This document shows, piece by piece, positions 6,326 through 48,337 of a stretch of 64,000 nucleotides of DNA. The notes below the pieces were generated by a model that searched no databases, was not told where the DNA came from, and was given only the letters and a program-made list of their open reading frames with translations. The stretch lies in contig OZ241828.1 in assembly GCA_965202585.1 (NCBI GenBank), forward strand, positions 31,248,001-31,312,000, written 5' to 3'. The translations under genes and the position numbers were made by a program. Numbering within the stretch: position 1 is the stretch's first letter; each line of letters starts with the position of its first letter. Source of the stretch: Thalia democratica (lineage: Eukaryota).

Positions 6326-6582
6326 TGTAGCTTTCGAGCTTTTCCTTCCTTTATTATTTGGTAATGAAACCAGTTCTAAAGTAATAATTAAAAGTTTTAG
6401 CAACTACTGTTAAATTAATCTAATATAAAAATCAAGACCTACAGTATTTTTTATAAAACATTAACTCAATAGTTAAGGTGTTTGTTTTTTTTTTTAATAA
6501 CAGCTGTACACAGTCGTGGAAGTTTTTAAAAGTTTTAAAGTAACTAGTATACAAACTTATTATCAATATTGAATTATTTAAC

Positions 6583-6812
6583 CATAACACGATAGTTTTT
6601 CACACGAATTCGTTTTACCATACGCCTTATATCATCGACACTCGGATTCTGATTTTTCAAGAACTCTCGTTCCAGAAATTCTCTCTGGAAATTATCAAAA
6701 CGCTCGTACGGCGCATACCTTTCAGTGACGGATTGATTTGTTAAGGACCCCCTAATGTTATTGGGCGACGCTGTAGTTAAGAAAATTAATTTATCATTCC
6801 TTATCATAACTC
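6583..6812 (-). CDS. Unit A homeobox exon (homeodomain helices 1-2 to residue 46)
   Basis: Acceptor TTTTAACAG, donor GTTAAA. RFDNFQREFLEREFLKNQNPSVDDIRRMVKRIRVKNYRVM has F8, Q12, L16, E17, F20, P26, V45 and joins in phase 0 to NWFHY at 6375. Confidence 0.8.
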
Positions 6813-8689
6813 CTGTTAAAAGGTTGTTAAAATCACATCTTACTAAGTAAATTAGTTAAATTGGTTTTTATAAATAGTTAATAACTATGTCAAAAATAAG
6901 TGCACTGTGGAAGTTATAAAGCTTAAGTATAAGTGATGTCAAAAACTAAAATTTTATTTAGAATACAAAAATATGTAAAATATGTTATTAACATCTTTAT
7001 CAATTTTGAAAATAGTTATTTCAACTACTGGTTTTTCTAGTATTATAATTCTAACAAACCCTATATAAACGTGTTGACTGGATTACAAAGTTTCGGAAGA
7101 AGAGAATGGTTGGGAATTATATTTACACGTTGGTGTCCAACATAGTCGGGTGAAGGTAAACCCTTCGATGATTAACCGTTTAGGTGACTGCTGTTGCTAG
7201 GAAACTGTTGCCAGATGCTGGAACTAAAGGAGCCTGCAAAAAGTTGGAAGAGGTTGTTGGGGGCATTTGATTGAGCTCTCTGTTTGGATTCTGTCGAAAT
7301 TTGTATTTCAAAGCTAGAGATAAATTGTTAATAAATTTAGAAACTATATAAAATTAATAGTGTATTTGAATAGCATACTTTTACAGAACAGTATTAAATT
7401 TTAAAATGATTGTTATGCTTAAACAAAAAAAATAAATTAATCAAAAGTTGACCTGTTTGGTAGTAAAAGCTTTAGCACGTCCAACTCTTGCAGTAGGAAA
7501 GTTACTTTGGTGTTGGGGACCACCCGGAAAGCCAGGACTTCTTCTAAAGAAAAGGAGGAGAAAGGGAGAGCTTCCCTGAAAAAATCTTTGATTTGGGGGA
7601 TTTTCTTGAAGTAACATTCTTGGAAAGGAGTTTTCCTGAAGTGGAAGTTTTGTACTCAAGAATCTTCCTTGTTGTGAAAATGTTTGATTTGTCGAGATGT
7701 AGTTACAATTGCATCTGTATAGAGGGCACGAAATACAATCCGTTTGGTCCATTTTTTTCAATTTTGTTCTGCTTTTTTAGAGGTTATTTACAACACCTGT
7801 AGTTAATAATAAACACTTATAAAAGAAGATCATTAGTTAATAAAAAAACCTTTAAAATAAGAATGCTATCTAGATTTTAACTGTACCATTAATAATTCAT
7901 AAGTATAGCTCAGTTTGAACGTCTAAGAAAGTTTTACATTTTCAAAAATACCTATTTCTGACTTTAACCTTAATTAAGCAAATAGTTTGCTTCATATACA
8001 TTAGTAAACAAAGTGTTTACCATATAAACAGCTTAGTGTATGCTAGAATTGCTGATTGCTTACAATTTCCCCTAAACAAAAAAGGTTTAAGTTTTGTTAT
8101 TATCGAGGTATACTTAATTAGTAGTATTTTAATATTGTTTTTTAAAATTGTTATAAAAAATAAAATTTTTCTAGTATTACTTATAACTATCTTTTAAAAA
8201 AGTATTTATAGCATGTGTTTTACTATAGCTTATTACTTTCTATATAATTCTTCATTTGTCCTTTAACGTATTTTTTAGTAAATGTATTACTTAATAGTTT
8301 TACTACTGTCGAAACTTTGAATTTAAAAATATATTAAAGTTTTCAAAGAATTCTATTTCGTTTACGTAAATATATATATATTTTTCAGTAAAATCATTTC
8401 TTTTTTAAAGTTGTACTAGTGATTTGTTTTGTTATACAAAAATTAATTTTATCTAACCAAAAACTAAATTTATTTTATAATATTTATTGGCCATTTTTAT
8501 TTAGTTTTCTTTATCTAGTATATAAGTCAAGATATATTTTAAACTAAATAAAAATAGCTTTTTTATAATACAAACACCTTATGGAACTTACGATGAATTA
8601 AAATATTTAGACACTTTGCTAAAGTAATATATTTTATCAAAAAAAAAAAAAAATCACTACAACGTAAAAAGGTTTATTCCCAAATCTTC

Positions 8690-8792
8690 AATTTTAAAAA
8701 GCGTTTAATCATTCGTGTAATAATTTGAACTTGGCTACTTATTAACGCGTAGGTCAGGATTCGGCAAACTGCTGGCTTTGATATGCTTATAC
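8690..8792. promoter_or_regulatory. Conserved upstream block of unit A (putative promoter or 5' non-coding exon)
   Basis: The block aatcattcgtgtaataattt...ggcaaactgctggctttgatat recurs upstream of units B, C and F. Function is inferred only from conservation and position. Confidence 0.4.
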
Positions 8793-11700
8793 CAGGGGCG
8801 TCGCGTGGGGTGGCACACTGGAGCTGCAGTCCCACCTTTAAAAAAAGAAAAAGAAGAAAAAAGAAAATTTCCCTTTATTCAGTTTTCCTGCTTTTTTTCC
8901 ATTGAACTTAACGATAAATTTGTTAGTTTTTCAAATTTTACATTCAGTTTTCAAATATTCGTTAAATGGCTGGCGCTGCAAGCTAAAACTGTGTGTGCTG
9001 CATTTTAAACATATACAAATTTCCTATACAAAAAGTTGTTGAAAAGATTATTTTTAGAGCTGCATTCAATGCAGCGCTGTGTGAATTAAACTGAATATAA
9101 AGAATATAGTGAATATGAATACACTGTTAACTAGTTTTTGAACATTATACATTGAAACAACTACTAGATGTAAACAACTTGAATACAGTGAAAGTAAAGT
9201 TTAGTTTTTGAGGTGAAAGTTGCAAGATCAAAACCCAGTGGTCAACACATATATACAAAAAAAAACTATAATAAGCCAAAAGTTCTAACAAGTTAATAAA
9301 GGACATTATTCTAATAAAAAATTCAAAACTCAATAAATTTATGTGTGTTTTATTGATAATTCTTTAAAAAATGGTCATTAATTGTTTTTTTTTTCATATA
9401 TCATATTTTTTTATTCCAGATTACCTTTAAGTAAAAGAAAAAAAAAGGCTACCTATCTTATTTAGATAAGATAATTGAATTTCTTTTAAATATAAGTAAT
9501 TTATATTTTTGATAACTTTTAGTATTAAAATAAGCAATATGTAGCTAAAAAGTTACATGCAAGTTTTAAATGTAACTGCCTTATATTGATAATAAAATTT
9601 GCATAAAAAATAAAAGTTTTCAAGTTGAAATCTTCAACCTAAAGTTTTCTCAACTTAATGTAAAAATATTTAGAACAAGAATATGATGAAAGATATAAAA
9701 AAAATATTTCAAACTAAAAAATTTAAAAAATCTTAATTATTTTGCTAAAAATCTTGGTTAACAATTACTTAAAATAAAGGAAAAGGTAAGATATAGTGAA
9801 ACTTTTTTTTTTCTGTAAAATTCCTCACATAAAGAACCTGTTGTTGCCTTAGTTTTATTTTAAGCATTTATTTGATTCTGATCAAAAAAAAATTAAAAGA
9901 ACTCTGAAATCACTCCATGATTTCTGTATGGTTTGGCATGAAATTTAAATTAATGTTAAAGCATTTATAAAATAAGTTTATACAGCTTGAGCTTATTTTG
10001 TAGACTTCTAAGAAAACTATAGATTGTTTTGAATTGCTCTTTAAATTGATTTTTGACAAATAGCTAATTAAAGTTGGAGAGCACTAAAATTTTATAATAA
10101 GAGGGAAGTATCACTTAACAAAATCAAACTATATTTTTATCTCCAATTTTTATTATAAGCAAATACATTAAAGTTTTTAGATAAACTTACTTACACAACA
10201 AAAGACAATTCTTATAAATAAAATTATATTAACCTGTATTAAAACTTACAAGTTTTATCTATTTATTTTAAATGAAAAAGTTATTTAAGGAATAAAGTAT
10301 ATAGAAAGTTTGTTAAGGACATAGGGGGTCTATCATTTTTTTATAACAAAAATTAACATTCGAAATTATATGAAAGCGTTACTTATATATTACAAGATAC
10401 TTTTCACATTGAAAAAAAAATCAGCTGTGAAATATCAATACCGTGTAAAAATTTTCACAAATAGTTCAACATAATGAATTTTTTAGGTTGTTTTAAAAAA
10501 TAACAACATGCAAACTACAAATTATAGTGAATGGACTGTGGATCAGCTTAAACGCCTTGATATAAATGCTTTGTATGAAGTTAAAAAGCCAAAGTTAAAA
10601 AAACAGTAGATCAATACCAGATATTTCTAATACCCAAGAGTGTACATCAAGAGGTTTGAAGTTTATTATATGACTAAGCTGTAAGTTTGAACTATATGAA
10701 AAAAGTTAATTATATTTAAATATGTGTTTGTTACTTTGAAAAGAAATTACATCATGAGGAAAAAGTTATTATGTTTACAAAGATTTTTGCAGTTTTAACT
10801 AAAATATTAGCTTTATAACTTAAAGTCTTTAGAGCTAAGGTATTTTTGAAACATTGTTTTATCCTATAATATTTTTTAGCTGAGATTTTAGCAAAGGAGA
10901 AATTTTTCAAGCTTTTTTATATATTTACTTTTCAGGTATTTATAGTGTTATCAACATCAGTTTTTGTAACAACTATAGCACTCAAATAATGAGAATGAAG
11001 AGTTTTTTTTATTAATAGAGTGTGTAAATTTTTTTTTTTTCTAAAAAAAGATAGAGTTTTGTTTTGTGTTTTTTATTAATATTTGTTGTTGTTAAGTATT
11101 AAAGTTTATATGTTACTTTAAAACTTTTAATTTTTATAGTTTGCAAATAGTAAACAACTAAAAATATTTTAATTTATTTTTAATTCTCTGTAGTGAATGC
11201 TACTTTTGAATAAACTTTTTATTTTATTTTTTTCAGATACATTATATGTTTTTAGTTAGTATTTCATTAATTAGATGCTAATGTAAATAGATTATTTTAC
11301 AAATTTTAGTTTTGTTAGTCAACAAATTAAAAACTATCACATAGATTTTGCTTTATTTGTTTATGTTGTATATTTAAACTAATTCTGAATCAACTTCAAT
11401 TATGTTTTTCTTAAAAGTTATTTGTTTTATATAAATATTTTTTGATAGTAGATATAAATGTTTAAAGGTTATTTTACAACTTGTTGTTATTTAATCTGCA
11501 AACAAAGACCTTTTAAAAAAAATTGCTTTATTTGTTTATTATCTATATTGAAAGCTAATTCTGACTAAATTTTGCTTTTTACTTTTTTATAAGTGATTTT
11601 TAATTATATATGTTTTAAAACGTAAGTAGAATTTTATTTAATTTTTTTAGTGTGTAAAACTAATTTAAAAATGATTTAATTTTTTTTACTGCTGTAAAAT

Positions 11701-12449
11701 TTATAATTTTTTCTAGACCTTTGCATTGTAAAAGTTTTTAAAGGAAATTCCTTCTAGTGTGATTTTTTTCAATTATAATGTTATTTTTTACTAGTGAAAA
11801 ATAAGTAAGTAACTCAAAAGAAACAAAGTTACTGTTTAAAGCAATTTGTTTTTAGTTGCTTTAAGAGTTTCTTTAGTTTTTGAGTTAACTTTATAATCTA
11901 CAAAAAAGATATAAATGATATTTTTTGATCCTTAACTTTATTTTGCTCAACATATTTTCTTTTTTTTTTTGTTTGTAAAACTATTCATGCTCAAATAGTT
12001 AAATACGTAGATTTTAAATCTTTTTAATAGTTGTATTGTAAGAAGTTATTAAAAAATGAAAAATAATTATTTTTTAATCTTCGAAAAAAAAACTTATTTT
12101 GCACTTATATATTAGTTATGACAATACATACAAACATTTTATCAATGTATGATATATTGTAAATTAATGTACTGCATTATGATAAATATTTTAAGCAACA
12201 TAGTAATGTATTTCCTTCATAAAATACTTTAAAACAAATTTCTCGTATGTTTGAAAATAAGTATAAAATATATTTTTAATGTATGTTTTTTTTTATTCAT
12301 AACAAGAAGCATTTAAGCTAATATCTTAAACACTTTTAGCTTAAAAATTTCCCTTGAGTTTTATTTTAATGTTTCTAATTGGGGGATTTTTTTAAGTTGA
12401 CAACTCAATCTGCAGCACCCCCTAACAAAAATACCACGCGACGCCACTG
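8793..12449 (+). mobile_element. Non-autonomous hAT-type DNA transposon, 3657 bp, copy 1
   Basis: TIRs CAGGGGCGTCGCGTGG / CCACGCGACGCCACTG. 8-bp TSD GCTTATAC at 8785-8792 and 12450-12457. The empty paralogous site is visible at ~18740-18800. Strand is assigned arbitrarily, to contrast with copy 2. Confidence 0.95.
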
Positions 12450-15400
12450 GCTTATACTGCTTAGCTAAAAACATATCTTTAAAAAAGTAAACTTGATGTA
12501 TTTTTTATGTTAAAAAGATGAATAGTTTGGTTACAATAACAGTGGTTTAGTCTAGATTGCAGCATTTTCTATCTGGTTATTCTTTGGATTGTTTTTTAAG
12601 ATTACTATTTTGAATTAAGTTGAGAATACTTTTTTTTTTTTCATTTAGCATGCCAACATAAAAAATTAGTTATAGATGTATTTACTTTAACAGAATGTTA
12701 AGTATTTAAAAAGCACCCTTAGATAACTGTTTCAAGCAAATTTATGTTAAATCTCTTTTTCTGTGAAAATCAAAGGGAAGAGTAAAAAAGAAAGAATTGT
12801 TTAAATTTTTTTTGCCTTGTAGTATTACAGTTTTAAATTTAGACAAGTATTTAAAATATAAAAAAGTGTAAATTAAAACTTAAGGAAATTTGTTGTTGCT
12901 AATATTATTATTGTTTTTATTTACTGGAAGCATAAATTTGACAGTACTTAATATAATGTTTTCATTTATAAAATTCAATTTCAGTTATGGCAGATTTTAC
13001 TTCTTTTAAGTTAATAAAAATTATGCAATAGTTTGTTTATCTATTCGAATGTTGTAAATTTTTTTTTAATGTTCAATTAAAATTATTAAATTAAGTAAAA
13101 ATTACACTTTTTGCACTAAATACTGATAAGATTAATGGAAAAATATTTCAGCGTATTACATTTTTGCTTTCTTTAGAGAGATTGTAACCTATCATTCAAG
13201 TATTCAACGTTTGCTATAAGTATTTTTTATCTTTTTTATAAGTTGATTGAAAGATCTTTCGTATCTTGACTTGAAAGTAGATATACTTTTTAGTTCTAAT
13301 GTTACTAAACAAGTTGTTAAGTACATTTTTATACACGAAATACAATTAGTTATCGTTTAAGTTTTTTTTTATTTCATTTTGATTAACTAATTGTTTTATT
13401 ATTAAAATTTAAATATTTAAATGATCAAAAATATTATTACATCTAATAGCTCGTAGAAATTTTATAAGTATTTGTTTACGACTCGATAACCGACATACAC
13501 CATGTCCTTAGATCAAACTTTTTAAGCGTTTTTTTTTGTCGTTCACTACACAATTTAATTAAAAAATAGACTTTGAATAAAATATTTAACTACTTAAGGC
13601 TGTATTAAACATTATCTTGTTTAACTTGTGTTTAAGTAAGTAATTTTTTTTTACAACTACATATACTTCAAAAATTTTTGACAAGCAAGGAGTTTTTATA
13701 TGTAGTACGATCGTTGAACGGCTTTTTATAAAAAATATTTCTCGCGGCACATAAAACACGAAGGAGCTCTAGTCTAGATTTTTTTTTAAACTTGTTCTTT
13801 AATGATTCAATTAATAAAATACTTACAACTAGAACTAGTTTTAAAAGAAGAATAATTTTGAAAGCTTATCTTCTCGTTTATAGTCGTAAGTTTGATAGAT
13901 AAATTGCACTGATGAATTATTTATAATCAAAAAAAGATTTGTAAAAAAACTCAATAATTTTTTCATAAGTTTTGAAAGCATGCATGTGTTTAGGTTTAAG
14001 AAAGAACTGTTTGACTTGTCAATCTGCACAAACTATATTATCATTAATTTTTAAAAATACTTAAACCAAGTATAAATAGATAAATGCTGTTGTTATAAAT
14101 TTAAATTTTTAATTTTATTTTGATAAAAATATCATAAATAGTACAAACAGTATTTTTGAACTCGATTTAAAAGCGTCTTAATAACATTTTTGAGAAAATA
14201 TAAAACTAAATTATACTTTTAGTCTAATATTTCATATTATTAATAATAATTATGCTTTTATATAGTATTCCTAAATTATAACGTGTTAAAACAATACGTA
14301 AGATTTTATATACTTATACTTAAATAAAACCTAAACAAATCTGACTTAGTTTAAAATTTTATTTATTCTATGCCAGGTAGATTTTAGAAAACTAATTCTT
14401 AACTGAAGTCTTTAAAAAAAAACTAAACGTTTTATTAGTACTACTTAGGCTTTTTTTTAATTTTAGGCTTAGACTCTTTTTTTTTTATTGAACTAGGTAA
14501 ATTCTCAAATAAATGTTGAAAAAAACGTTTATAAGTTGTTAAGCAGCTTACTTAAGTATCGTTTTGTTTTATTTTGTTTTATTTCTTAAGATTTAAATCT
14601 TCGGTTCACAATAACAAATCAGCTCATAGAGATTTTAAAAGGATATGGTACACGACTCGTAAACCAAAAACTTTTTTTTTTGGGAAACTTCCATTTCTTA
14701 TCTGCGGTCATTTTTCATTAACAATCGAGTCCCACCCGATAAAATCCCACTCAATTCATTGGTTGTACAAATTAAATATTTTTTAAACCCTTGTTTACTC
14801 AAAAGTGCAAAGTTTTTACTATCTAAAATTTAAACTGTTATTTGGTTTTCAACATTAGTTAAACTTTTTTTATTTTTAACTCAAAAAAATTTTTATATAT
14901 TTTTATTATAAATATTTTTAATCTAAATTTAACGGAATATATAAATTTTTAAAATTTACATCAAAACAGTAATTACATGTTTTATATATTTTTTAAATTT
15001 AGTCTTTCTTTGTTAACCATAATCAGTATTTAATATATTAATTTCTATTTTTTGTTTAGGCCTAATATTATCTCCATTTAATTTAACTTATTTCCGTACT
15101 TAGACACTAAGTTTTTTTTTTTTTAAACATAAGAAAATTTATAATAACTACATCATTAGTTAATCATTTAAAAATGTTTATTAACAAAAACTATATTAAC
15201 AAAAAACGTATGAATATATTTTATAAAAACTAATGCAAATATAAAAGTCAACAACCTAACTTTGGACAAAATATTAAATAAAACAAAAAGCAAAGTTATA
15301 TATAAAACTCAGTAAGATAGTTGTTAATTGTTTTCCAGATTCGAATATCGCAGTTACAAAAAATCCTGGTCACTTAGAGTAAAATTGTGTAGCGGAGATG

Positions 15401-15473
15401 GTTGCTTAGCAACTTGCTGTGGTCTAGCAACTCGTTATTGACAAGTATCATGTGCTTGCCTTCCAGGTTTCTT

Positions 15474-15839
15474 TCAAGCGAGCTCTAGCCCTGGTTGCCT
15501 CAACTGCGGAAACTGCCTATAATATTGGTGTTGGCTAGTAGCTTGTTCTTGCCGAGTACCTCCTTGTTGCTTAACTAACTCAATTTGAATGTTAGCTTGC
15601 GGTTGCGCAAACTGTAGTTGCCCAGTATCTTGTTGTTGCCTACAAACTAGTTGTTGCAGAGTATCTTGTTGTTGCTTAGTAGCTTGTTGTTGACTAGAAA
15701 CAATTTTCTGCCTACAAACTAGTTGTTGCGTAGTATCTTTTTGTTCCGTAGTAGCCTGGGTTTGTGAAGTATCTTGTGGTAGTTGTGATTGAACATTTTT
15801 AGATTTTCTTTCTTTCGGTCGTCGATTATGGAACCAATA
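15474..15839 (-). CDS. Unit B exon 4 (helix 3 YWFHNRR plus Gln-rich tail)
   Basis: Acceptor AAATTTCAG at 15840; 121 codons, then TGA. The family terminal motif follows in the same frame after two stops. Confidence 0.8.
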   Translation of the reverse strand, partial: YWFHNRRPKERKSKNVQSQLPQDTSQTQATTEQKDTTQQLVCRQKIVSSQQQATKQQQDTLQQLVCRQQQDTGQLQFAQPQANIQIELVKQQGGTRQEQATSQHQYYRQFPQLRQPGLELA

Positions 15840-18056
15840 CTGAAATTTTAATATTTTAATTTAACAAGTAGTAGTAAAAAATTATTAATGATTTAAAATA
15901 ACTCATTTATTTTTATTGTGGTCTAGTGTAAATTTCACATTTTCCTGTAAAATATAATTTAAGTTTAAAATATACCATTAGTAACGATTAAGACAAATTT
16001 TTCGCTCTTCTTCATCAACTTCTAGTGTAAGATTCAAATTACGCCCCCCTTACTAGTTTTAGCTTTTATAAAGTATAGTATGCTTTTTATCAGTAAAAAA
16101 AAACTTACTATTATATTGTGTGCTTTTACTCCTAATTTTAACGCAATTCGCGCTGACCTTTCAAAGTTGACATACTGACCATTCGAGAACTCTTCTTCTA
16201 GAATTTTCTTTTGCTCGGCTGTGTAATTAATTCGAGACCTCGGGACTTTGGACCTGGGAGGCTGAAGAGAACTGGAAACTTGTACATTACGTAACGACAG
16301 TCCTGTTTATTTGAATATTAGTATATCACTCTTTATTAGCTTTTATTTAGGACTTATAGATGACTTGATTTGTAAAGTTTTGTAGAGAAATAAGTATTTA
16401 ACTTAAATGCTACTATAAAAATATAAAATATAAACAAAACAAAGTTCAGCAAAATTTAAGAAAAGTTAATTATGTAAAATTGTTTTACATAAATACTTTA
16501 AATATTTAGATAAAAAGAATGTTTGGTACTCCTATATATTTTTTCTTTACAGTTTAAGTAAAAATAAACTACTCTGTACTTAAAATGGTAAGAGTTAAAG
16601 TCTTTTAATTTTTTTATCAGCTAATATTAAAATAACTATTTAGGTAAATTTACTAAATGTTTTGCAAAACTTGTTATTAACATTAAAACCGCATTTCTAA
16701 CTTAAATAAGACAGTTTTTTGCAAATTCAATAATTTTAAAAGTTAATTTTCAAAGCCTCATATAAAGAGATAGGTACATATTGAAAAAAAAAACTAATCA
16801 CTTAAGGTTATTGACGAAGCTGTTAATAAGCTATTTAAAATTTTTGAAATTAGTAAACAGTATTAAGTTCAAACAGTATTTTTTAAACTATATCTTAAGC
16901 AAAAACTGACTATCTTTGACGTTTAGAAGCGAGTTGACTGCAGTACTTGGAATTTGTCGACCGGAATTATTGGTTGAAGTAAGTTGTGGTCCAACATGGT
17001 GTGTAGGACTCGGAGGTGGCTGGTTGCTAGTAAACCCCTGTTGTTGCCGTGGTGGGTGATTACTGTTGCTACCAGGAAACCCATTTTGTTGCCGTGGTGG
17101 GTGATTACTGTTGCTAGGAAACCCTTGTTGTTGCCGTGGTGGCTGGTTGCTGTTGCTACTAGGAAACCCATTTTGTTGCCGTGGTGGGTGATTACTGTTG
17201 CTAGGAAACCCTTGTTGTTCCCATTGTTGATGATTGCTGTTGCTAGGAAACTCTTGTTGTTGACGTGGTAGGTAGTTGCTGTTGCTTGGAAAACCTTGTT
17301 GCCGTGGTGGGTGATTACTGATGCTAGGAAACCCATGTTGTTGCCGTGGTGGCTGGTTGCTGTTGCTAGGAAACCCTTGTTGTTCCCATTGTTGATGATT
17401 GCTATTGCTATGGAACTCTTGTTGTTTCCATTGTTGATGATTGCTATTGCTATGAAACTCTTGTTGTTGCCATGGTGGATGATTGGTGTTGCTAGGAAAC
17501 CCTTGTTGTTGCAAGGGAGCGTGTAATAAAGGATTCTGCTGTATACTAGGAGTTCTGCCTTGAGACTGTTGTATAAACCGTTTGTTTCGATTCTGATAAA
17601 ATTTTATTTCGAATTTAGGAAGAAGTTTTGAAGTATTATAGTAATTAATTTAACTTAATGGTGTATTCAAACTGTTTAATTTTATATGTCGTGAGAATTT
17701 TGAAAAATGATGCATTTACTCTTAGTGGTAAGTTTCTTAATAAATAAATTACTTATAGTTAGAAAATTATAAAATAAACTATTTTAGTACGCTTTAAGTT
17801 GGTAAATTCGTTAGAAATTAACCTGTGGCGTCGTAATACGATCCCTATTTTGTCCATATTCTGCCGAAAAGTTCGCTCGGTATTGGGAATTACCTTGATT
17901 GAAATGGGGATTACCCTGTGTATTTCTTCTAATTTCGGGCCTGGGAGGTGTAAAAGCAGGAGGTAAACTTTTCTGAAGTAACATTCTTTCATTTGTAAGG
18001 ACACTGTGACAATTGCATCCGTTTTCAGAGCACAAATAACAATCTTCTTGGTCCAT
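15474..18056 (-). CDS. Unit B: PRD-like homeodomain protein, 491 aa, four coding exons
   Basis: Exons 18056-17823, 17592-16911, 16302-16109, 15839-15474 join in phases 0/1/0 with no internal stop (donors GTTAAT, GTCAGT, GTAAGT). Homeodomain KVPRSRINYTAEQKKILEEEFSNGQYVNFERSARIALKLGVKAHNII|YWFHNRRPKERK. The exon-2 donor is the least certain junction. Confidence 0.8.
16109..16302 (-). CDS. Unit B homeobox exon (absent from the ORF track)
   Basis: Acceptor AAACAG and canonical donor GTAAGT; encodes R5, Y8, Q12, L16, E17, F20, Y25, I34, A35, L38, I45. Confidence 0.9.
17020..17520 (-). repeat. Imperfect coding repeat, ~42-bp unit, about 12 copies (QQQGFPSNSNHPPR)
   Basis: Lies in unit B exon 2 and stays in frame throughout. 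The motif is single-copy in exon 2 of units A, E, F and in the visible part of G. Confidence 0.9.
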
Positions 18057-18659
18057 TCTTTTAATTTTAACTACTTTTCTCAAACCAATTTACAATACCT
18101 GTATAAATGTAACTGTATAAAAATACAGTTTGATTCCTTTGGTATCAACATAAATTGATAGTAATTTAAGCAGTTTTTAAATAGAGATTAAATTTTCCCC
18201 TTAATAAATGCAGATGCATAACTTGGTTTAAACATCTATAAAGAGAGTTTATTCATTCTTAACTAAGGCTCTTACTGCGTTTACCTAAACTAAGCAAAAT
18301 ATGTTTAGTTATACTAGTTCGGTTATGTAATTATAAATATTGTTTAGTTTAAAGTTCAATTTAAGAGTGGTAGTAGTGATTATTTGTTTTTTACTAGGAG
18401 TGATTTTATCTGACTGGTTGTAAAATTTGATTTAACATATTAAATGGATATTTTAATTAAAACTTTTTTACCTTGTATAAAAGTCAAATGCTATTTCAAA
18501 CTAAATTAACAAAGCTACATTATAATAAAAAGAAATAATGGAATACACGATGAAATAAACTTTTAAGGCAGTTTCTATTACTAATATAATCTTATTAAAA
18601 AGCTGTAAATCACTGTAACATAATTAAAACTTTGTTCTAAAAATTTTTGTTTTGAAACT

Positions 18660-18760
18660 TTTAATCATTTGTGTGATAATTTTATCAATCTACTCAGCTT
18701 TTTATTAATACCTGGGTAAGAACCAAACAAACTGCTGGTTTTGATATGTATATACAATTT
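18660..18760. promoter_or_regulatory. Conserved upstream block of unit B
   Basis: Paralog of 8690-8792, without the transposon. Confidence 0.4.
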
Positions 18761-22669: not shown

Positions 22670-22765
22670 TATTTAATCGTTCGTGTAACAATTTTAAGAT
22701 ACTACTTAGCTATTCATCAACGCCAGGGTCAGAACTCGGCAAACAGCTGGCTTTGATATATATAC
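22670..22765. promoter_or_regulatory. Conserved upstream block of unit C
   Basis: Paralog of 8690-8792. Confidence 0.4.
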
Positions 22766-23015
22766 TATTTTGCTAAAATCACATCGTAAAAAATTTCATG
22801 TAGTTAAATTATAAACTAGGTATTTAACATAAAAATATTTAACTACTGAAGACTGTATTGTAGCTTATTTTGTTAAACTTTTGTTTTAAAAAGTATTTTT
22901 TATTTGCTACTACATATACTTAAAACAATTCTGGCTCGCAAAAAACATAATTCTAAAATATAAATAAAATTCTGAAAGTAAGCTCTTAATTTTCGCTCAG
23001 ATTCGAAGATTGTAA

Positions 23016-34600: not shown

Positions 34601-35620
34601 CAAAGGCTTTGTTTGTGTTCTAATTTAGTTTTATTTTAAGTTTTAGGCTCAGACCATATCTTAATTTTCGTATTGTCATAAAATTTTTTGTGTACATTTA
34701 CTAAAACATTTTAAAGTAAATATATAACTTAGCTAAGTTTTGTTTAGTGTTTTTTTCATTTTGTTGACTGTTTTGATTCAAAAGGTTAAAACATTAGAAG
34801 ACAAAAACAAACTAGCTTATAAGAGACTGTAAAAGCATGTGATTTACGAATTGTGACTAAATGTTTTTTTTTATTACACCAGGTCCTTAGACCAAAATTA
34901 TTTGAGCGTTTTTTATCGTTCAATAAACAGTTTGAATTCGAAATCTAACAAAACTATGAAAAATGATTTGATTTTAAAACATAGCTAAAATTAATCTTGC
35001 AAGCTAGGTAAAAGTTAATGTAGTGATATGAAAAATATTTCAAACTCAAAAATAAGAATACTACACTAATTTTTTGAAAATTGTAAAAACAGTGTTCTTT
35101 TGTTAAAAACATTAATGTTAGCATTTATATTGATACTTCATGCTGTGAATCAATATGGATTTACAATCTAATAAATAAAAACAAAATTAGCAAAACCACA
35201 ATTAACCAATTTTATGAAAATTTTATTTCTTTTCAAAAACTTACTAAAAAAATACATAACTTTACTAATTCGAACAGCTTTTTTCTGGTGAATAACTTAT
35301 TTTAAAATATAACATAATACATTTAGTTTTCTTAAAATTAGTTTTAGTACTTTCGTAGTAAGGCTCATCACAAATAGTTTCTTACTAAATTGGAATAATT
35401 ACAAATTGAAATAAAATCATACTGAAGTTTAAAGTTTCAAGATATAAAATGATGTAATAATCAAAGGTTAAAATTTAAATAAATGCTTATGTTAAACACA
35501 TTTGGTATACTAATAAAACTCGTTAGAATTAAAACAATCTACATAAACAGACGATAAAAATAAAAATTAAAACCGTACTTAACAAATAAATTATAACAAA
35601 AAAATAATTACTTAAAATAA

Positions 35621-36278
35621 CTAGTATAAGGACTTAAAAAAAGTAACATCATCTATAAATCTAATTGTCACTGTGGTAGTGACTACGTGGGAAAAACATC
35701 TCAATAGTTTCATGTAAGAATCGATTAGCATGTTCCGAAAGTCTAGAAAAGCTGGTTTTATGGCCGTTCTAAGAAACCAACGAAAACATACTTCTCGGCA
35801 ATCGGGCAATATTTGCTTGGAAAAAAGTTGCCTGCTATTGCTAGGAAACCCTTGTTGCTGCCAGTGTGCTGGATCTAAAGGAGTCTGATGAAAGTAAGAA
35901 GAAGTTGTTAAGCGCATTTGATTGAAGACTTCGTCTCGATTCTGTTTTTAAATTACAGATGAATTCTACCTAAATAGTTTAATAACTATATGACGTAATA
36001 GTTTATTAGAATTGCTTAGTTCTATAGAAAAGTAAAAAACTCCGAAAATTATTAATCTGCTTAAACAAAAATTTAAATTGATCAAAAGTTCACCTGTTGC
36101 AGAGTAAGAGCCTTAACAGGTTCATTTCCAACAGGAAAGTTACCTTGGTATTGGGGATTACCCTGATTATACTATAATTATGCTGGAAACCAAAACTTCT
36201 TATAATTTGAGGTCTAGGAGGCGTAGGGGGACAACTGCATTCACATGAAAAACATTTTTTACAACCTGGTTCTTCCAT
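35621..36278 (-). pseudogene. Unit E: exons 1-2 only, no homeobox
   Basis: Exon 1 36278-36094 (MEEPGCKKCFSCECSC) has a 1-nt deletion relative to paralogs. Exon 2 from 35941 (NRDEVFNQM...HWQQQGFPSNSRQL) turns into unrelated sequence near 35825. No homeobox exon was found between here and unit D. Confidence 0.75.
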
Positions 36279-39011: not shown

Positions 39012-40386
39012 TCAAGTAGCTTGATGTTGACAAGAAATTTGTGGTTGTTCAGATTTTTTTATTTGAACATTAGTATTTTTGAGTTGTCGTCGTTTTTTAA
39101 ATTTCTCTCGTCTGGCTTTTGCTCTTCGGTGCCAAAACCAACTCTAAAGTTTTAATAATTAAAAATTGAAGCTTTTTATTTAAATAAGTGATTTATTAAA
39201 ATCTAGACCGATGCTAACATTTACTAACATGTATTCGAAAATATAAATGCTGAATTTCTTTTAGAATAGCTGTATACAGCCGTGGCAGCTTTAAAAGTCA
39301 TTAAGTCACAACTAAACAGTTTTCAATATCTAACCGCTACACGTCTTAAAGGCACACGAATTTCATTTGCAATACGCTTTCTATTTTCTAAATTCGGATT
39401 CTTATTAATCAAGAACGCACCATTCAAAAAACCCCTCTGAAATTCATCCAAACACTGGTTTGGGGCTAATGTTTTTGTGCCGGGCTGGTACCTTAAGGAG
39501 GCTCTATTATCATTTGACGACCCTGTAGTAAACAATGCTAGTTTATTACACCTCCCAACTATATTTGTTTTAGCATGGTAAAAGCACACCTTCCTCATTA
39601 AATAATTAGATTTGTATTTATTTGTAGTTAATTAGTGTAACAAAAATAAAAACACAATGGCAGCTAAGAAGCTTAAGTATTAGTAATGCCTAAAATAAGA
39701 GTTTTTTGTAAGTTTATTACTAATAAAATTAAACTACTATATACAGTTTTTATTTCAAAATTTTTAAAATTCTTCCTTCTTATGAAAATAGTTACTTTAA
39801 CACCTTACTTTTTGTTATGGTTTTTGATACAGCTAATTAAACAAACCAGTAATTGGATAATTAGAATATTGGGAACTGAAATGGTTTGGATTTAGACTTA
39901 GACGTTGTTGTCCAACATAATTGGGTGAATTTAAACTCGCTAATGGGTAACCATATAGGTGATTACTGTTGCTAGGAGGAGTTTGTTGTTGCCAGAGTGC
40001 TGAAACTGAAGGATTCTGGTGAAAGTTAGGAGAGGTTGTTTATTATAAAATTTAAGTTTTAAAAGTACAAATAAATTGTACATTATTAATTTAATAATTG
40101 TTTGAACATAATGTTGTGTTAGGATTGCTTATAAAGAATAGTATTAAATTTTGAAAATAAAAAATCTGCTAAAATAAAAAGATAAAATATAAACTTTCAC
40201 AGGTCCAACGTTAGCAGTAGGAAAGTTTTCTCTGTGTCGGGGATCACCCTGAAAACCAGGACTTCTAATTTGTGGTCTGGGATGAGGAAAAGAGAGTGGG
40301 GAGCTTCCCTGAAATAAAATTCTTTGATTTTGGGGATTTCTCTGTTGTGAAAACCTTGGATTTGAGGAGGTGTTGTGTTTGTCCAT
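39012..40386 (-). CDS. Unit F: short PRD-like homeodomain protein (~238 aa) or pseudogene
   Basis: Possible exons 40386-40195, 40015-39847, 39558-39335, 39143-39012 join in frame if non-ancestral splice sites are used for intron 1. Helix 3 is RVA|SWFWHRRAKARR. It lacks both the Cys motif and the terminal motif. Confidence 0.6.
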
Positions 40387-41439
40387 TTTTTAGTACAATT
40401 TTTTAGACGTAATTTACAACACCTGTAAACGTAACTATTTTAAATTACAAATTAATACTTCTTACACAATTATAAAGTAATTTATTTCAACCTAAAAGAT
40501 AACAATTGAAGGTATCATATTTTTGACAAGTAGATTAATTTAACATTAACATAACTTTTAGTATCTATGACTTTTCTATATTTTAAACAATTTTTCCTCT
40601 AAATAAACATCAGTTAATAAAATTTCATTCTATAAGAACTATATTGAGATTTTAACTCTACTATTAATAAATGCATAAGTAAAACTCAGTTTAAACATCT
40701 AACAAACAGATTGTAAATTTTTAACTTTAGCTATTACTGTGGTTATCTAAATAAAGCAAATAAGTTACTTCAAGAAAAAAATTAAATCTAATTACTTAAT
40801 TTATAAACAGATTAGTATTTGCTTTAACTTCTGTTTACTTACAACTTCTACTAAGTTTTAATACCTAAATTTTGCTATAATCATTTAGGTGTTATTTATC
40901 ATTGTACTGTCTATTTGATTAGCATTGTTTGCTACTTTTTCTAAACTGATAAAAAAAGTTGAGATATTTATTTAACTACCCTTAACTTTACCTTAAAAGT
41001 ATTCATAGTAAATGCTTTACCTTAAAGTGATGTGACTATTGAAACTTCAAATTTTTATTTGAAAATATGTACATAAGTTTTCATAGTATACTAGTTCGTT
41101 AAGGTATATATAAAAATAGCTTACGACTAAAACTTATTTATTCAGAATGGTACTAGTGATTATTTGTGATATACTAAAATTAGTTTATCTAACCGATAGT
41201 AAAATTTGTTTTTAAATATTAAACAGTCATTTTCATTTAGCTTTGTTTATCTAGTATATGAGTTGAATCATTTTTTTAATTCATAATAAAATATATTCAT
41301 ACAATCCAAAAACCTAATGGGATTTACAATGGCTTAAACTGTTAAAAATGTTTTTTAAAACTAATATAATTGTATTAAAAACTTTAAATTACTGTAACGT
41401 GATAAAAACTTTATTCTCGAAACTTTAATTTAAAATTTT

Positions 41440-41530
41440 TCAATAATGATTTTAAAAGATTGATGATGCTTCTTAACTATTTATTTAACGCCTGGGTCAA
41501 AAATTGGCAAACTGCTGGCTTTGATGTGTA
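41440..41530. promoter_or_regulatory. Conserved upstream block of unit F
   Basis: Paralog of 8690-8792. Confidence 0.4.
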
Positions 41531-43002
41531 TTATTTAGCTAAAAACATACCTTAAAAAATTAAAGTTGATGCAATTAATTTAAAAACTAGGCTTTCACTA
41601 TAAAACATGTAACTACTAAGGTTGTGTTATAGCTTGTTTTGCTAAACTCGTGGATTAAAAAAGTAATTTTTATTTACCACTATATATACTTCAAACAAAT
41701 TTTGATTTCAAAAACATTTTTATATGTAGTACGGTCAGCAATTAGCTTTATCTAGGAAATATTCCTCGCGACATATAGAACACTAAGAAGCCTGAGTTTA
41801 GATAATTTGTAAAACTTGTTCTAACATGACAAAGTTAATAAAAGTACTTGTATTTAGAATCAGTATTAAGCAGATAATATTTTTTTTTCTTGTGTTAATA
41901 GTCGTACGTTTAATATATATTTTGCACTGATGAATCATAAAACGAGATTGATAATTTTGAAATGTTTGTTAAAAAAAACTTTGAAAAAATACATGTTTTT
42001 TAATTCAAGCTAGACCTACTTCAACTTTTAATATGCAAAAACTGTATCTTCTTTATCATGACTTGTAGAAAATCTTAAACAAAACATAGATAAATAGAGA
42101 TGTAAAAATATAAATACTTATAGGCCTAATTTTTTTTTATCTTATTTACATTTTATTAAAATAAATAAGATTTTATCAAAAAGCAAAAACATTTATTGTT
42201 TTTGTTGAAGAAACACTAATTATATACATTATAAAACTAAGAAAAAAAATGCAATTTAAAATATTTACGAAAAAAAATAGCTATGTTTCTGTAAACGTTT
42301 AATTGAAATATTAGTAATTTTTAACTTATTAAGAGAATACATTATGATAAACAGAATAAATTATAATGATAACCGTTACCTAAGTAGTACAAGTAAAGCT
42401 TAACTTATTGAATGCATTAATTAAGATAATAAACTAAATTTTATAAATCAATGAAAACTTGAAACAAATTTTATTCAAATTATATTATACATATTTTATA
42501 ACAAACGAAATGTTAAGAACTATTTTTCAACTCAAAAATTGAGAAAAATATTGAACGCGTTATTAATGTTTGTTAAGCATATGATAAATAACTCAAATTA
42601 AAATATATGAATTAAAAGGAGCTGTTATCAACCATATTTTGGAAAGTTTTGATTGTTAGTTTATAAATACCCAACAGCCACTTAATAAAAAATTTAGTTG
42701 TGGAATTATCGTTAACTATAATCTGATTGTACAAAGTAAATACTAATCAATTCTTACTTACTGAAAACATGCACTTTTTTTTAATACTTTAGCCGTATCT
42801 GTATTTTTCAGTATCTGATAATTAAACTTTCTACTATAACCTTTAAAAAAGAAACCAGTTATTTCTTAACGTAAATATTTTTAAGAATTTAATTTCAATC
42901 TAAAGTTAACGGAATACTTAGACTTTTAAAATGTCATTCAAAACAGTATTAGTATTGCATAATTAGAAAGAGATTTTATTTTTAAAATTGATCGGTATGA
43001 AC

Positions 43003-46000
43003 CAGTGGCGTCGCGTGGTATTTTTGTTAGGGGGTGCTGCAGATTGAGTTGTCAACTTAAAAAAATCCCCCAATTAGAAACATTAAAATAAAACTCAAGG
43101 GAAATTTTTAAGCTAAAAGTGTTTAAGATATTAGCTTAAATGCTTCTTGTTATGAATAAAAAAAAACATACATTAAAAATATATTTTATACTTATTTTCA
43201 AACATACGAGAAATTTGTTTTAAAGTATTTTATGAAGGAAATACATTACTATGTTGCTTAAAATATTTATCATAATGCAGTACATTAATTTACAATATAT
43301 CATACATTGATAAAATGTTTGTATGTATTGTCATAACTAATATATAAGTGCAAAATAAGTTTTTTTTTCGAAGATTAAAAAATAATTATTTTTCATTTTT
43401 TAATAACTTCTTACAATACAACTATTAAAAAGATTTAAAATCTACGTATTTAACTATTTGAGCATGAATAGTTTTACAAACAAAAAAAAAAAGAAAATAT
43501 GTTGAGCAAAATAAAGTTAAGGATCAAAAAATATCATTTATATCTTTTTTGTAGATTATAAAGTTAACTCAAAAACTAAAGAAACTCTTAAAGCAACTAA
43601 AAACAAATTGCTTTAAACAGTAACTTTGTTTCTTTTGAGTTACTTACTTATTTTTCACTAGTAAAAAATAACATTATAATTGAAAAAAATCACACTAGAA
43701 GGAATTTCCTTTAAAAACTTTTACAATGCAAAGGTCTAGAAAAAATTATAAATTTTACAGCAGTAAAAAAAATTAAATCATTTTTAAATTAGTTTTACAC
43801 ACTAAAAAAATTAAATAAAATTCTACTTACGTTTTAAAACATATATAATTAAAAATCACTTATAAAAAAGTAAAAAGCAAAATTTAGTCAGAATTAGCTT
43901 TCAATATAGATAATAAACAAATAAAGCAATTTTTTTTAAAAGGTCTTTGTTTGCAGATTAAATAACAACAAGTTGTAAAATAACCTTTAAACATTTATAT
44001 CTACTATCAAAAAATATTTATATAAAACAAATAACTTTTAAGAAAAACATAATTGAAGTTGATTCAGAATTAGTTTAAATATACAACATAAACAAATAAA
44101 GCAAAATCTATGTGATAGTTTTTAATTTGTTGACTAACAAAACTAAAATTTGTAAAATAATCTATTTACATTAGCATCTAATTAATGAAATACTAACTAA
44201 AAACATATAATGTATCTGAAAAAAATAAAATAAAAAGTTTATTCAAAAGTAGCATTCACTACAGAGAATTAAAAATAAATTAAAATATTTTTAGTTGTTT
44301 ACTATTTGCAAACTATAAAAATTAAAAGTTTTAAAGTAACATATAAACTTTAATACTTAACAACAACAAATATTAATAAAAAACACAAAACAAAACTCTA
44401 TCTTTTTTTAGAAAAAAAAAAAATTTACACACTCTATTAATAAAAAAAACTCTTCATTCTCATTATTTGAGTGCTATAGTTGTTACAAAAACTGATGTTG
44501 ATAACACTATAAATACCTGAAAAGTAAATATATAAAAAAGCTTGAAAAATTTCTCCTTTGCTAAAATCTCAGCTAAAAAATATTATAGGATAAAACAATG
44601 TTTCAAAAATACCTTAGCTCTAAAGACTTTAAGTTATAAAGCTAATATTTTAGTTAAAACTGCAAAAATCTTTGTAAACATAATAACTTTTTCCTCATGA
44701 TGTAATTTCTTTTCAAAGTAACAAACACATATTTAAATATAATTAACTTTTTTCATATAGTTCAAACTTACAGCTTAGTCATATAATAAACTTCAAACCT
44801 CTTGATGTACACTCTTGGGTATTAGAAATATCTGGTATTGATCTACTGTTTTTTTAACTTTGGCTTTTTAACTTCATACAAAGCATTTATATCAAGGCGT
44901 TTAAGCTGATCCACAGTCCATTCACTATAATTTGTAGTTTGCATGTTGTTATTTTTTAAAACAACCTAAAAAATTCATTATGTTGAACTATTTGTGAAAA
45001 TTTTTACACGGTATTGATATTTCACAGCTGATTTTTTTTTCAATGTGAAAAGTATCTTGTAATATATAAGTAACGCTTTCATATAATTTCGAATGTTAAT
45101 TTTTGTTATAAAAAAATGATAGACCCCCTATGTCCTTAACAAACTTTCTATATACTTTATTCCTTAAATAACTTTTTCATTTAAAATAAATAGATAAAAC
45201 TTGTAAGTTTTAATACAGGTTAATATAATTTTATTTATAAGAATTGTCTTTTGTTGTGTAAGTAAGTTTATCTAAAAACTTTAATGTATTTGCTTATAAT
45301 AAAAATTGGAGATAAAAATATAGTTTGATTTTGTTAAGTGATACTTCCCTCTTATTATAAAATTTTAGTGCTCTCCAACTTTAATTAGCTATTTGTCAAA
45401 AATCAATTTAAAGAGCAATTCAAAACAATCTATAGTTTTCTTAGAAGTCTACAAAATAAGCTCAAGCTGTATAAACTTATTTTATAAATGCTTTAACATT
45501 AATTTAAATTTCATGCCAAACCATACAGAAATCATGGAGTGATTTCAGAGTTCTTTTAATTTTTTTTTGATCAGAATCAAATAAATGCTTAAAATAAAAC
45601 TAAGGCAACAACAGGTTCTTTATGTGAGGAATTTTACAGAAAAAAAAAAGTTTCACTATATCTTACCTTTTCCTTTATTTTAAGTAATTGTTAACCAAGA
45701 TTTTTAGCAAAATAATTAAGATTTTTTAAATTTTTTAGTTTGAAATATTTTTTTTATATCTTTCATCATATTCTTGTTCTAAATATTTTTACATTAAGTT
45801 GAGAAAACTTTAGGTTGAAGATTTCAACTTGAAAACTTTTATTTTTTATGCAAATTTTATTATCAATATAAGGCAGTTACATTTAAAACTTGCATGTAAC
45901 TTTTTAGCTACATATTGCTTATTTTAATACTAAAAGTTATCAAAAATATAAATTACTTATATTTAAAAGAAATTCAATTATCTTATCTAAATAAGATAAG

Positions 46001-46659
46001 TAGCCTTTTTTTTTCTTTTACTTAAAGGTAATCTGGAATAAAAAAATATGATATATGAAAAAAAAAACAATTAATGACCATTTTTTAAAGAATTATCAAT
46101 AAAACACACATAAATTTATTGAGTTTTGAATTTTTTATTAGAATAATGTCCTTTATTAACTTGTTAGAACTTTTGGCTTATTATAGTTGTTTTTTGTATA
46201 TATGTGTTGACCACTGGGTTTTGATCTTGCAACTTTCACCTCAAAAACTAAACTTTACTTTCACTGTATTCAAGTTGTTTACATCTAGTAGTTGTTTCAA
46301 TGTATAATGTTCAAAAACTAGTTAACAGTGTATTCATATTCACTATATTCTTTATATTCAGTTTAATTCACACAGCGCTGCATTGAATGCAGCTCTAAAA
46401 ATAATCTTTTCAACAACTTTTTGTATAGGAAATTTGTATATGTTTAAAATGCAGCACACACAGTTTTAGCTTGCAGCGCCAGCCATTTAACGAATATTTG
46501 AAAACTGAATGTAAAATTTGAAAAACTAACAAATTTATCGTTAAGTTCAATGGAAAAAAAGCAGGAAAACTGAATAAAGGGAAATTTTCTTTTTTCTTCT
46601 TTTTCTTTTTTTAAAGGTGGGACTGCAGCTCCAGTGTGCCACCCCACGCGACGCCCCTG
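43003..46659 (-). mobile_element. Non-autonomous hAT-type DNA transposon, 3657 bp, copy 2 (inverted relative to copy 1)
   Basis: Same TIRs and same length as copy 1; TSD GTATGAAC at 42995-43002 and 46660-46667. Reverse complement of 8793-12449 with only scattered substitutions seen (e.g. YYSFFLY vs YYSCFLY in the passive ORF). Confidence 0.95.
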
Positions 46660-47023
46660 GTATGAACCATAATCAACATTCAATATATTTAAAATTATTT
46701 TTCGCAAAATATGCACATATTATTTTTTTTGTTTCCCTAATTAGATACTAAGTAATTTTAATAATGATACTTAAAATGTTTCAATACTTGTTCTTTAATT
46801 TACTAGAAAAAACAATTGTTTTTAGTTTAAAAAATTTATTAACAAAAATTATACAATCAAAATACAAATAAATAATTTTATAAAATACAGTACAATTATA
46901 AATGTAAAATCGACAAGCAGCTTATACTTTTAACGAAATACAAGTTAAATAAAACATAAACAAAAGTTATAAACAAAACCTAAATGTAAGCTCTTAATTT
47001 TCGCCCAGGTTCAAAAGTCGTAG

Positions 47024-48337
47024 TTACAAAAAATCGTTCTCAGTTAGAGTAATAATGGGTGGCGGAGACAGTTGCGTAACTACTTGTTGTTGAGTAGTAG
47101 TTTGTTGTTACATACCTTCTAGTTGTCCATTAGTTTGTTGTTGTCAAAAATTTGTTGCTGCGAACTAGCTTGTTGTGGCCTAGAAATTTGTTGCTGCGAA
47201 GTAGCTTGTTGTTGCCTAGGAATTTGTTGCTGCGAAGTAGTTTGTTGTGGCCTAGAAATTTGTTGCTGCGAAGTAGTTTGTTGTTGCCTAGGAATTTGTT
47301 GCTGCGAAGTAGTTTGTTGTTGCCTAGGAATTTGTTGCTGCGAAGTAGTTTGTTGTGGCCTAGAAATTTGTTGTTGCGAAGTAGTTTGTTGTGGCCTAGA
47401 AATTTGTTGCTGCGAAGTAGTTTGTTGTTGCCTAGAAATTTGTTGCTGCGAAGTAGTTTGTTGTTGCCTAGAAATTTGTTGCTGCGAAGTAGCTTGTTGT
47501 TGCCTAGAAATCTGTTGTTGCGAAGTAGTTTGTTGTTGCATAGAAATCTGTTGCTGCGAAGTAGTTTCTTGTTGCCTAGAAAGTTGAGGTCGACCAGAAA
47601 GTTGAGGTTGTGCAGATTGTTGTGTTTCTTGATATCTTCGTTCTCGAAACCACTTCTATAATTTAAAAATCATACAACAGCAGTTAAACTAATCAAATAT
47701 AAAAAACTTCTTCTAAAGTAACTTTTCATAACATCTCTCTGATAATTAAGCTGCTTAATTTTGTTTATATCAGCTGTGCACTTTCGTTGAGGCTTTTAAA
47801 AGTTTTAAAATAACTAGTATACACTTATTGATATCTAACCGCTACTTTATTCTCTGTCACACCGATTCGCTCTGCAATACGCCATCTATCGTCGAAATTC
47901 GGATTCTGGTTCATCATGAACACACCTTCCAAAACACCCCTCTTGAAATCATTAAAATGCTGATGCGCCGCTAATCTTTCAGTGATAGGTTGATACGTTA
48001 GGGACGCTCTGATATTGTTAGGCGACCCTGTTGTCAAGGAAACTAGCTTACTACTCCTTATCATAACTTTATTTTTTAGGCATAGCAAAAGCACACCTTT
48101 CATTCATTCAAATTTTATCAGTAAATAATTAGACTTGTGTATATTAGTAGTTAATAAATGTAACAAAACTAAGAAAACAGTTGCAGCTAACATAATTTAA
48201 TCGAAAAACATATAAAATTCTTCTTAATTATGAAAATAGTTATTTAACCCCTTACTCGCTGATGGATAATCATATAGGTGACTGCTGTTGCTAGGAAACC
48301 CTTGTTGTTGGAGTGCAGGAATTGAAGGATTCTGGTG
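47024..48337 (-). CDS. Unit G: PRD-like homeodomain gene, 5' part in the assembly gap
   Basis: Exon 2 is visible from the gap to 48256 (donor GTAAGG); homeobox exon 48066-47840; exon 4 from 47655 (KWFRERRYQE). Open to TAG at 47119. A 1-nt shift near 47145 and a TAA near 47108 separate it from the terminal PPPIITLTENDFL* at 47024. Confidence 0.75.
47150..47575 (-). repeat. Coding minisatellite, 36-bp unit, about 12 copies (SRQQQTTSQQQI)
   Basis: In-frame array in unit G exon 4; its unit differs from the 36-bp unit of unit A. Confidence 0.95.

Follow-up and report, generated by a model that had tools for sequence, protein, structure and literature searches.

What becomes of a homeodomain when the residues that read DNA are exchanged from one gene copy to the next? 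This question is raised by an array of divergent homeobox copies in the genome of Thalia democratica (GenBank assembly GCA_965202585.1, contig OZ241828.1, positions 31,248,001 to 31,312,000), a 64-kb stretch with a G+C content of 25% that we call the window. The homeodomain is a textbook DNA-reading surface frozen across animals: its positions 47, 50, 51 and 54 contact bases, asparagine 51 (N51) is nearly invariant, and known fast-evolving families mostly keep it. In the present family, every base-reading position varies, even between copies that are roughly 85-99% identical in DNA, while the scaffold and the phosphate contacts are conserved. We favour, with moderate confidence, a reading of the array as a lineage-specific, tandemly duplicated PRD-like homeobox family that evolves by birth and death and most of whose intact members would still be nucleic-acid-binding transcription factors.

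A preliminary description of this DNA had listed five helix-3 strings, in copies named A, B, C, F and G. All five were located on the minus strand, in the following homeodomains (a slash marks the intron).

Copy A, 6720-6583 plus 6375-6334, minus strand: homeodomain with VM/NWFHYQII, exon 4 starting at 6375; helix 3 NWFHYQIIKEGKAR, with N47, H50, Y51 and I54, R52 being replaced by Q and R53 by I.
Copy B, 16246-16109 plus 15839-15798, minus strand: homeodomain with II/YWFHNRRP, exon 4 starting at 15839; helix 3 YWFHNRRPKERKSK, with Y47, H50, N51 and P54.
Copy C, from 21145, minus strand: string R-stop-FQNR-stop-H, in which W48 has become TAG and R53 TGA.
Copy F, 39472-39335 plus 39143-39102, minus strand: homeodomain with VA/SWFWHRRA, exon 4 starting at 39143; helix 3 SWFWHRRAKARREK, with S47, W50, H51 and A54.
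Copy G, 47977-47840 plus 47655-47614, minus strand: homeodomain with VA/KWFRERRY, exon 4 starting at 47655; helix 3 KWFRERRYQETQQS, with K47, R50, E51 and Y54.

A scan of the window with a hidden Markov model (HMM) built from the family finds only these five homeodomain-bearing copies. Exon 3 by itself, which covers 46 of the 57 profile positions, matches the Pfam family Homeodomain (PF00046) in all of them, with E-values between 3e-7 and 9e-4. Copies A (23.8 bits, E = 4e-5), B (30.8 bits, 3e-7) and G (25.3 bits, 1e-5) score above the gathering cut-off of 22.9 bits, F (19.5 bits, 9e-4) and C (20.3 bits, 5e-4) below it.

Gene models, introns and splice sites were predicted by aligning the copies, from sequence alone. 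In A, B, F and G a phase-0 GT..AG intron of 184-269 nt is predicted between codons 46 and 47 of the homeodomain; its counterpart in C measures about 578 nt. In these four copies the 46/47 intron has the donors GTTAGA, GTTAAA or GTAAGT and the acceptors TTTAG, TATAG or TTCAG; its GTTAGA/GTTAAA donors are conserved across window and metagenome homeodomains, and the GTTAGA form in many relatives. Most predicted family donors (e.g. 39334, 47839, 6582, 40194 and 39846) read GTT(A/T)(A/G/T)A, not GTAAGT.

The window copies form two subfamilies. A, F and G have 22-25 of 60 homeodomain residues in common (42% identity over 60 residues between F and G), and B, which is nearest to C (68% identical over 28 residues), has 15-16 of 60 in common with them. 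B keeps R3, R5, N51 and R53, and C retains the canonical Q50-N51. In A, F and G both N51 and the basic N-terminal arm (R3/R5) are missing, residue 51 being Y, H and E, respectively; A additionally lacks R52 and R53.

Relatives outside the window were sought with a profile of A, F and G among 1.84 billion representative proteins. The search gave 23 matches in total. Eleven of them are single-stretch open reading frames (ORFs) of 71-142 residues, which without exception come from metagenome assemblies at ENA as ORF calls with no name (10 were looked up). The contigs fetched for them belong to marine ENA assemblies, mostly of Tara Oceans (PRJEB4352). No annotated protein set that was searched contains the family, whose relatives were found only as bare ORFs on marine metagenome contigs; the exon-3 ORF of F gave no match as query in a homologous-protein search, and a scan of JGI metagenomes with the family profile returned no relative. 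The 46/47 intron is present in all 8 metagenome homeodomains read, with lengths of 181-298 nt. One of these contigs, L001, carries a relative of G at about 90% DNA identity, with helix 3 RWFRERRYQETQKS. Others encode two homeodomains per gene (L002 together with L006-L008, L017, and L011 with L015), and each homeodomain of these genes is split at 46/47 (L002:1540-1848 plus exon 5; L017:304-660; L011 with L015). The two homeodomains of a gene differ in helix 3, as in NWFTSRRT and TWFKNRNN within one gene, and the second homeodomains of L002 and L017 match PF00046 at 30.3 and 33.0 bits. The family tree is a star.

Ten distinct homeodomains, from window copies and metagenome relatives, were scored by the entropy of their columns. 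The fold had been described as conserved, and its residues are indeed kept: L16, W48 and F49 have an entropy of 0, and E17, F20, R44, R52, R53 and K55 stay below 1 bit (F20 is found in 9 and R53 in 8 of the ten; A has I53). Core residues are invariant despite an overall identity of only 25-42% among the homeodomains. The invariance of F49, and of W48 outside pseudogene C, holds for the window copies as it had been put forward; in the wider family W48 is not universal, L011 having leucine at this position.

The variation noted at positions 47, 50, 51 and 54 extends to the whole family and to recent divergences. These four columns have entropies of 2.4-3.1 bits, with a mean of 2.60 against 1.65 for all columns (permutation P = 0.005; P = 0.013 against non-core columns only). 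Within A, F and G, 19 of the 60 columns show a different residue in each copy, a set that includes every one of the four contact positions (hypergeometric 0.008). N51 is replaced in 7 of the 10 homeodomains and present only in B, the dead copy C, L014, the second homeodomain of L002 and both homeodomains of L017. Residue 50 is Q in C and L014 and K in the second homeodomain of L002; elsewhere it is H, W, R, T, G or Y. The residue pairs at 50/51 include QN, KN, HN, GN, TS, TH, RH, RK, RE, WH, HY and YY. One face of helix 3 is thus free, with the residues responsible for the fold and for contact with the DNA backbone kept.

Among the window paralogs, pairwise dS (synonymous divergence) is saturated at 0.68-0.74, and they are too diverged for site models. 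Recent divergence was read from five close pairs: G/L001, L002/L006, L002/L017 for both homeodomains, and L010/L018, with intron divergences of 0.02-0.16 per site. Contact residues changed at 6 of 20 positions, and the remaining residues at 24 of 234 (Fisher P = 0.019; P = 0.042 if only non-core positions are compared). Pooled NG86 estimates give a non-synonymous divergence (dN) of 0.204 and a dS of 0.133 for the 20 contact codons, versus 0.051 and 0.085 for the remaining ones, a fourfold higher dN that 20 random codons seldom reach (permutation P = 0.005). The corresponding dN/dS is about 1.5 at contact codons and 0.6 elsewhere, the former, with 20 codons, being not significantly above neutral. 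An even spread of substitutions, which had been named as the sign of neutral decay, is not seen in the close pairs, where change is concentrated at the contact codons; the uneven spread rejects an even neutral decay of the whole domain. The 8 amino-acid changes that separate G from L001 are confined to positions 1-9, 41-47 and 59; four hit the N-terminal arm (P = 0.013), and positions 10-40 and 48-58 are unchanged. This distribution shows constraint on the helices of a copy that lacks N51.

The variability of the contact residues may be positively selected or merely tolerated. Diversifying selection on DNA specificity, with base-reading residues rewired as targets such as transposons or satellites change, in the way of KRAB zinc fingers, is a possibility that we hold only tentatively. 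It draws on the raised dN and dN/dS of the contact codons, on the clustering of G/L001 changes in the N-terminal arm, and on close relatives that differ exactly at 50, 51 and 54 (L002 and L017; L002 and L006 by T54I); the backbone-contact residues are kept, as expected with binding retained. On the other side, we estimate about 8 non-synonymous differences where intron or synonymous rates predict 4-6, which is not significant with 20 codons; the family has no known target, and several copies are truncated or dead. Of the diversifying selection first claimed for this locus, the faster change of contact codons stands and its excess over the neutral rate does not reach significance; as an explanation it is plausible but unproven. 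The conflict with a changing DNA target that was to drive it would be a purely conjectural cause.

With the same reserve we consider a relaxed constraint after the loss of canonical DNA binding. The homeodomain would then persist as a folded unit that interacts with protein or RNA, or acts as a competitor, and its reading face would drift. The replacement of N51 in A, F, G and most of the homeodomains scored is consistent with such a loss, as are the missing basic arm of A, F and G, the absence of R52 and R53 from A, and the C-terminal motifs cut off in B and G (see below). The contact-codon rate lies at or somewhat above neutral, though not significantly, and since a dN/dS of about 1.5 is compatible with the intron-based neutral rate, relaxed constraint on the DNA-reading face fits the data as well as diversifying selection does. 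Against the loss of binding stand R53, K55 and R44, conserved across the family, and a helix 3 that remains basic; the main known role of these three residues is phosphate contact. The canonical combinations Q50-N51, K50-N51 or H50-N51 also persist in L014, the second homeodomain of L002, L017 and B.

A more far-reaching version of selection would place every one of the four base-reading residues, N51 among them, under recurrent diversifying selection on a fixed backbone-binding scaffold, possibly tracking genomic targets that change fast, for instance the recently mobile transposons of the array; it seems rather unlikely to us.

The PRD-like family with nucleic-acid-binding members, which we favour, is compatible with either cause of the variability. 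Its class follows from three observations taken together: the 46/47 intron, the lack of a Paired domain and best structure matches within the PRD class. Exons 1-2 of A, B and F match no Pfam domain, a Paired domain included. The solved structures closest to the family profile are DUX4, aristaless, CRX, ceh-37/Otx, Paired and Pax6 (E = 6e-6 to 4e-4), in a ranking that set aside the tandem engrailed fusion construct 6m3d and in which the margin of the PRD class over other classes is modest.

A full gene of the family encodes a Pro/Gln/Asn-rich N-terminus, a 25-residue motif, one homeodomain (two in some relatives) always split at codons 46/47, and a Gln-rich repeat tail whose end is a short motif of acidic and hydrophobic residues, ...TLSEEDFL. 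The fold and the backbone contacts (L16, F20, W48, F49, the E17-R52 pair, R44, R53 and K55) are kept, and base-reading positions 47, 50, 51, with the otherwise near-invariant N51, and 54 change freely between copies together with the N-terminal arm. Most intact members would still use the canonical surface to bind nucleic acid, their sequence preference diversified or loosened, and act as transcription factors. Their expression, like DNA binding and the transcription-factor role, is what we infer for genes of this build.

How complete the window copies are can be read from their predicted exons.

Copy A, 6067-7752, minus strand: possible gene of 313 residues; exons 7752-7453, 7279-7177 (uncertain), 6812-6583 and 6375-6067.
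Copy B, 15474-18056, minus strand: intact four-exon ORF of 472 residues; exons 18056-17823, 17535-16911, 16302-16109 and 15839-15474.
Copy C, 20652-21833, minus strand: pseudogene; exon-3 remnant 21833-21717, exon-4 remnant from 21145, tail motif 20675-20652.
Copy F, 39012-40386, minus strand: intact four-exon ORF of 238 residues; exons 40386-40195, 40015-39847, 39558-39335 and 39143-39012.
Copy G, 47119-48331, minus strand: exons 2-4 intact (279 residues), 48331-48256, 48066-47840 and 47655-47119.

These copies are mixed: F intact and short-tailed, B and G with intact homeodomains, A doubtful, C and three fragments dead. The three introns of F are of the GT..AG type and measure 179, 288 and 191 nt. 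Exon 1 of G presumably lies in the N gap at 48338-48437. With a stop-codon frequency of 0.082 per codon at the composition of the window, the chance of staying open is 1.5e-9 for F (238 codons), 3e-18 for B and 4.5e-11 for G. C has several lesions, a frameshift and a TGA in exon 3 besides the two stops in exon 4. In A, exon 2 taken with the F-homologous acceptor has its frame broken by a 1-nt deletion followed by TAA; taken with acceptor 7279 and the short donor G/GTTAAT at 7176, it leaves the frame open over 313 residues. The status of A as a gene is ambiguous on this evidence.

The family C-terminal motif, SPxPx(I/L)TL(S/T)ExDFL and then a stop, is read in frame in L002 and L006, two relatives from metagenomes in which it takes the form ...LP.LTLSEEDFL. 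In B the ORF terminates at TGA 15476-15474, a second stop (TAA) follows at 15437-15435, and the motif, itself intact, lies in the same frame downstream of both (15383-15360). In G the motif (47053-47030) is likewise intact and out of frame, through a frameshift common to L001. F has a short tail behind its homeodomain, without the motif. The C-terminal 30-bp repeat array of A (5752-6329) is organised in higher-order units of 151 bp (5 x 30 + 1); with each superunit the frame moves by one, and the peptide repeat PPNTSVQIQK occurs in all three frames of the array.

Several observations weigh against functional transcription factors. Every window copy is defective in some way: C is dead, A ambiguous, B and G are separated from their C-terminal motif, and F is short-tailed. 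In no window copy is this motif in frame, A and F having none. The metagenome copies, too, include broken alleles (L004, L005). Most relatives, like A, F and G, are without N51, and A, F and G have no R3/R5; loss of N51 and of the basic N-terminal arm usually cripples DNA binding in known homeodomains. Overall dN/dS is high, at 0.5-1.1, and dN between G and L001 is close to intron divergence (0.061 and 0.060). Variants mapped on F are mostly non-synonymous (11 of the 14 listed), though some may stem from paralogues. Finally, the three sequencing runs that contain the locus look like genomic DNA, with contigs across introns and intergenic DNA, an even depth of about 50 and no spliced joints.

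That all window copies are pseudogenes in neutral decay, their helix-3 differences being meaningless, is nevertheless improbable: dead C, fragments D, E and Z, ambiguous A, the two premature stops of B and the frameshift of G before the tail motif, and the overall dN/dS would suit it, but long multi-exon ORFs stay open in AT-rich DNA with P of 1e-9 to 1e-18, splice sites are conserved, core residues are invariant between highly diverged homeodomains, and none of the 8 G/L001 changes falls in helices 1-2 or in the helix-3 core.

Besides the homeodomain, the gene copies have further parts in common. A motif of about 25 residues, KLxxLTTGSPNNIRASLxYQPxTE, precedes the homeodomain in G (48066-47978), F (39558-39473) and A (6812-6721) and is also found in the matched proteins P0003-P0007; it is conserved better than the homeodomain itself and matches no Pfam family. 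The N-terminus encoded by exons 1-2 is Pro/Gln/Asn-rich, and the tail is made of Gln-rich tandem repeats. Some high-ranking matches of the protein searches were not retained. P0006, a 729-residue repeat protein with ten matches to the pre-homeodomain motif, was set aside: it resembles a translated satellite, and its weak scores are summed. Three multi-homeodomain matches, P0002 and, from sheep, P0010 and P0017, were rejected as close relatives, their high rank resulting from the summed scores of many domains. P0002 lies on a marine ENA metagenome contig of 5,333 nt as a single ORF of 1,666 residues with about 18 homeodomains; it has no close kinship to the window family, and its helix 3 is widely variable (WFRNRR, WFAEKR, WFGHER, WLWRER and others).

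The array also contains fragments of the family and non-coding elements.

Fragment Z, 3148-4563, minus strand: 3' part only, with a 36-bp unit (QQVAMQQRDVSP) repeated about 35 times and the motif LPIITLSEEDF followed by a stop at 3227-3204.
Fragment D, 22940-23100, minus strand: 3'-end remnant with the C-terminal motif SPPPPILTLSGEDFL followed by a stop at 23045-23022.
Fragment E, 35621-36166, minus strand: remnant similar to exons 1-2, 71% identical to 7182-7528 of A, lacking a homeodomain.
Non-coding element of about 500 bp, 40933-41595, minus strand: upstream of F, with equivalents at 8260-8785 (A), 18310-18818 (B), 22362-22820 (C) and 48438-48925 (G).

The family HMM scan of the window detects no homeodomain upstream of fragment Z. 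Fragment E adjoins a very high-copy repeat (35600-35796), whose summed contig depth in the three runs is about 52,000, compared with about 300 for neighbouring DNA. The 500-bp element has 69-75% identity among copies and stops in all frames, and is conserved as well as coding sequence; the duplicated unit probably has its promoter or 5' leader here. A and F have in common a 28-nt block (ACAGGTGTTGTAAAT...; 7800-7774 in A, 40427-40400 in F), 93% identical between the two and placed some 40 nt ahead of the ATG, which may be a splice or trans-splice acceptor.

A 3,682-bp element is present in two copies, 99.8% identical and in opposite orientation, one between F and G (42995-46676, plus strand) and the other between A and B (8778-12457, minus strand). 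It has terminal inverted repeats (AGTGGCGTCGCGTGG ... CCACGCGACGCC) and an apparent target duplication (GGTATGAACC). Because the F-G copy is absent from the related contig L001, the element must have been mobile recently.

Among known systems, the eutherian ETCHbox genes (LEUTX, TPRX, ARGFX, DPRX and PARGFX), together with mouse Obox, come close in evolutionary mode. ETCHbox genes are PRD-like, of tandem origin and very fast in divergence, with gains, losses and many pseudogenes; the sites under positive selection lie in their N-terminal arm and recognition helix (PMC8208926). The same class is suggested for the present family by its 46/47 intron and PRD matches. It differs by its animal lineage, by the variation of all four base-reading positions, N51 included, and by its pre-homeodomain motif, Gln-rich repeat tails and two-homeodomain members. 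The likeness to ETCHbox, which has CRX as its progenitor, and to Obox, DUX and Rhox is one of evolutionary mode, not of membership.

DUX genes and the mammalian Rhox clusters are likewise tandem arrays of divergent PRD-like homeobox genes. DUX proteins have two homeodomains, as do the relatives L002, L017 and L011/L015, and DUX4 figures among the best structure matches. DUX homeodomains, however, keep N51 and bind defined motifs, and DUX arrays are made of macrosatellite units, whereas here each unit is a multi-exon gene that takes up roughly 8-10 kb. An orthology to DUX or Rhox was not found.

HOPX retains the fold without the key DNA-contact residues, and A, F and G, lacking N51 and the basic arm, resemble homeodomains of this non-binding type. 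In contrast to these, the present family keeps R53, K55, R44 and a basic helix 3, which speaks against most members having given up nucleic-acid binding altogether.

KRAB zinc fingers offer an analogy of mechanism only: they, too, combine a conserved scaffold with hypervariable base-contact positions in tandem duplicates, on an unrelated fold. In KRAB zinc-finger proteins, positive selection and the link to mobile elements are established. Set against the mammalian PRD-like families, the differences here are the lineage, the variability of all four base-reading residues including N51, the pre-homeodomain motif, the repeat tails and the two-homeodomain members. If our reading is right, the family would be a natural experiment on rewriting or abandoning homeodomain specificity, and would show that a mode so far known best from placental mammals had a separate origin in a further lineage of chordates. 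Were recurrent diversifying selection at work, it would be the homeodomain counterpart of the evolution of contact residues in KRAB zinc fingers.

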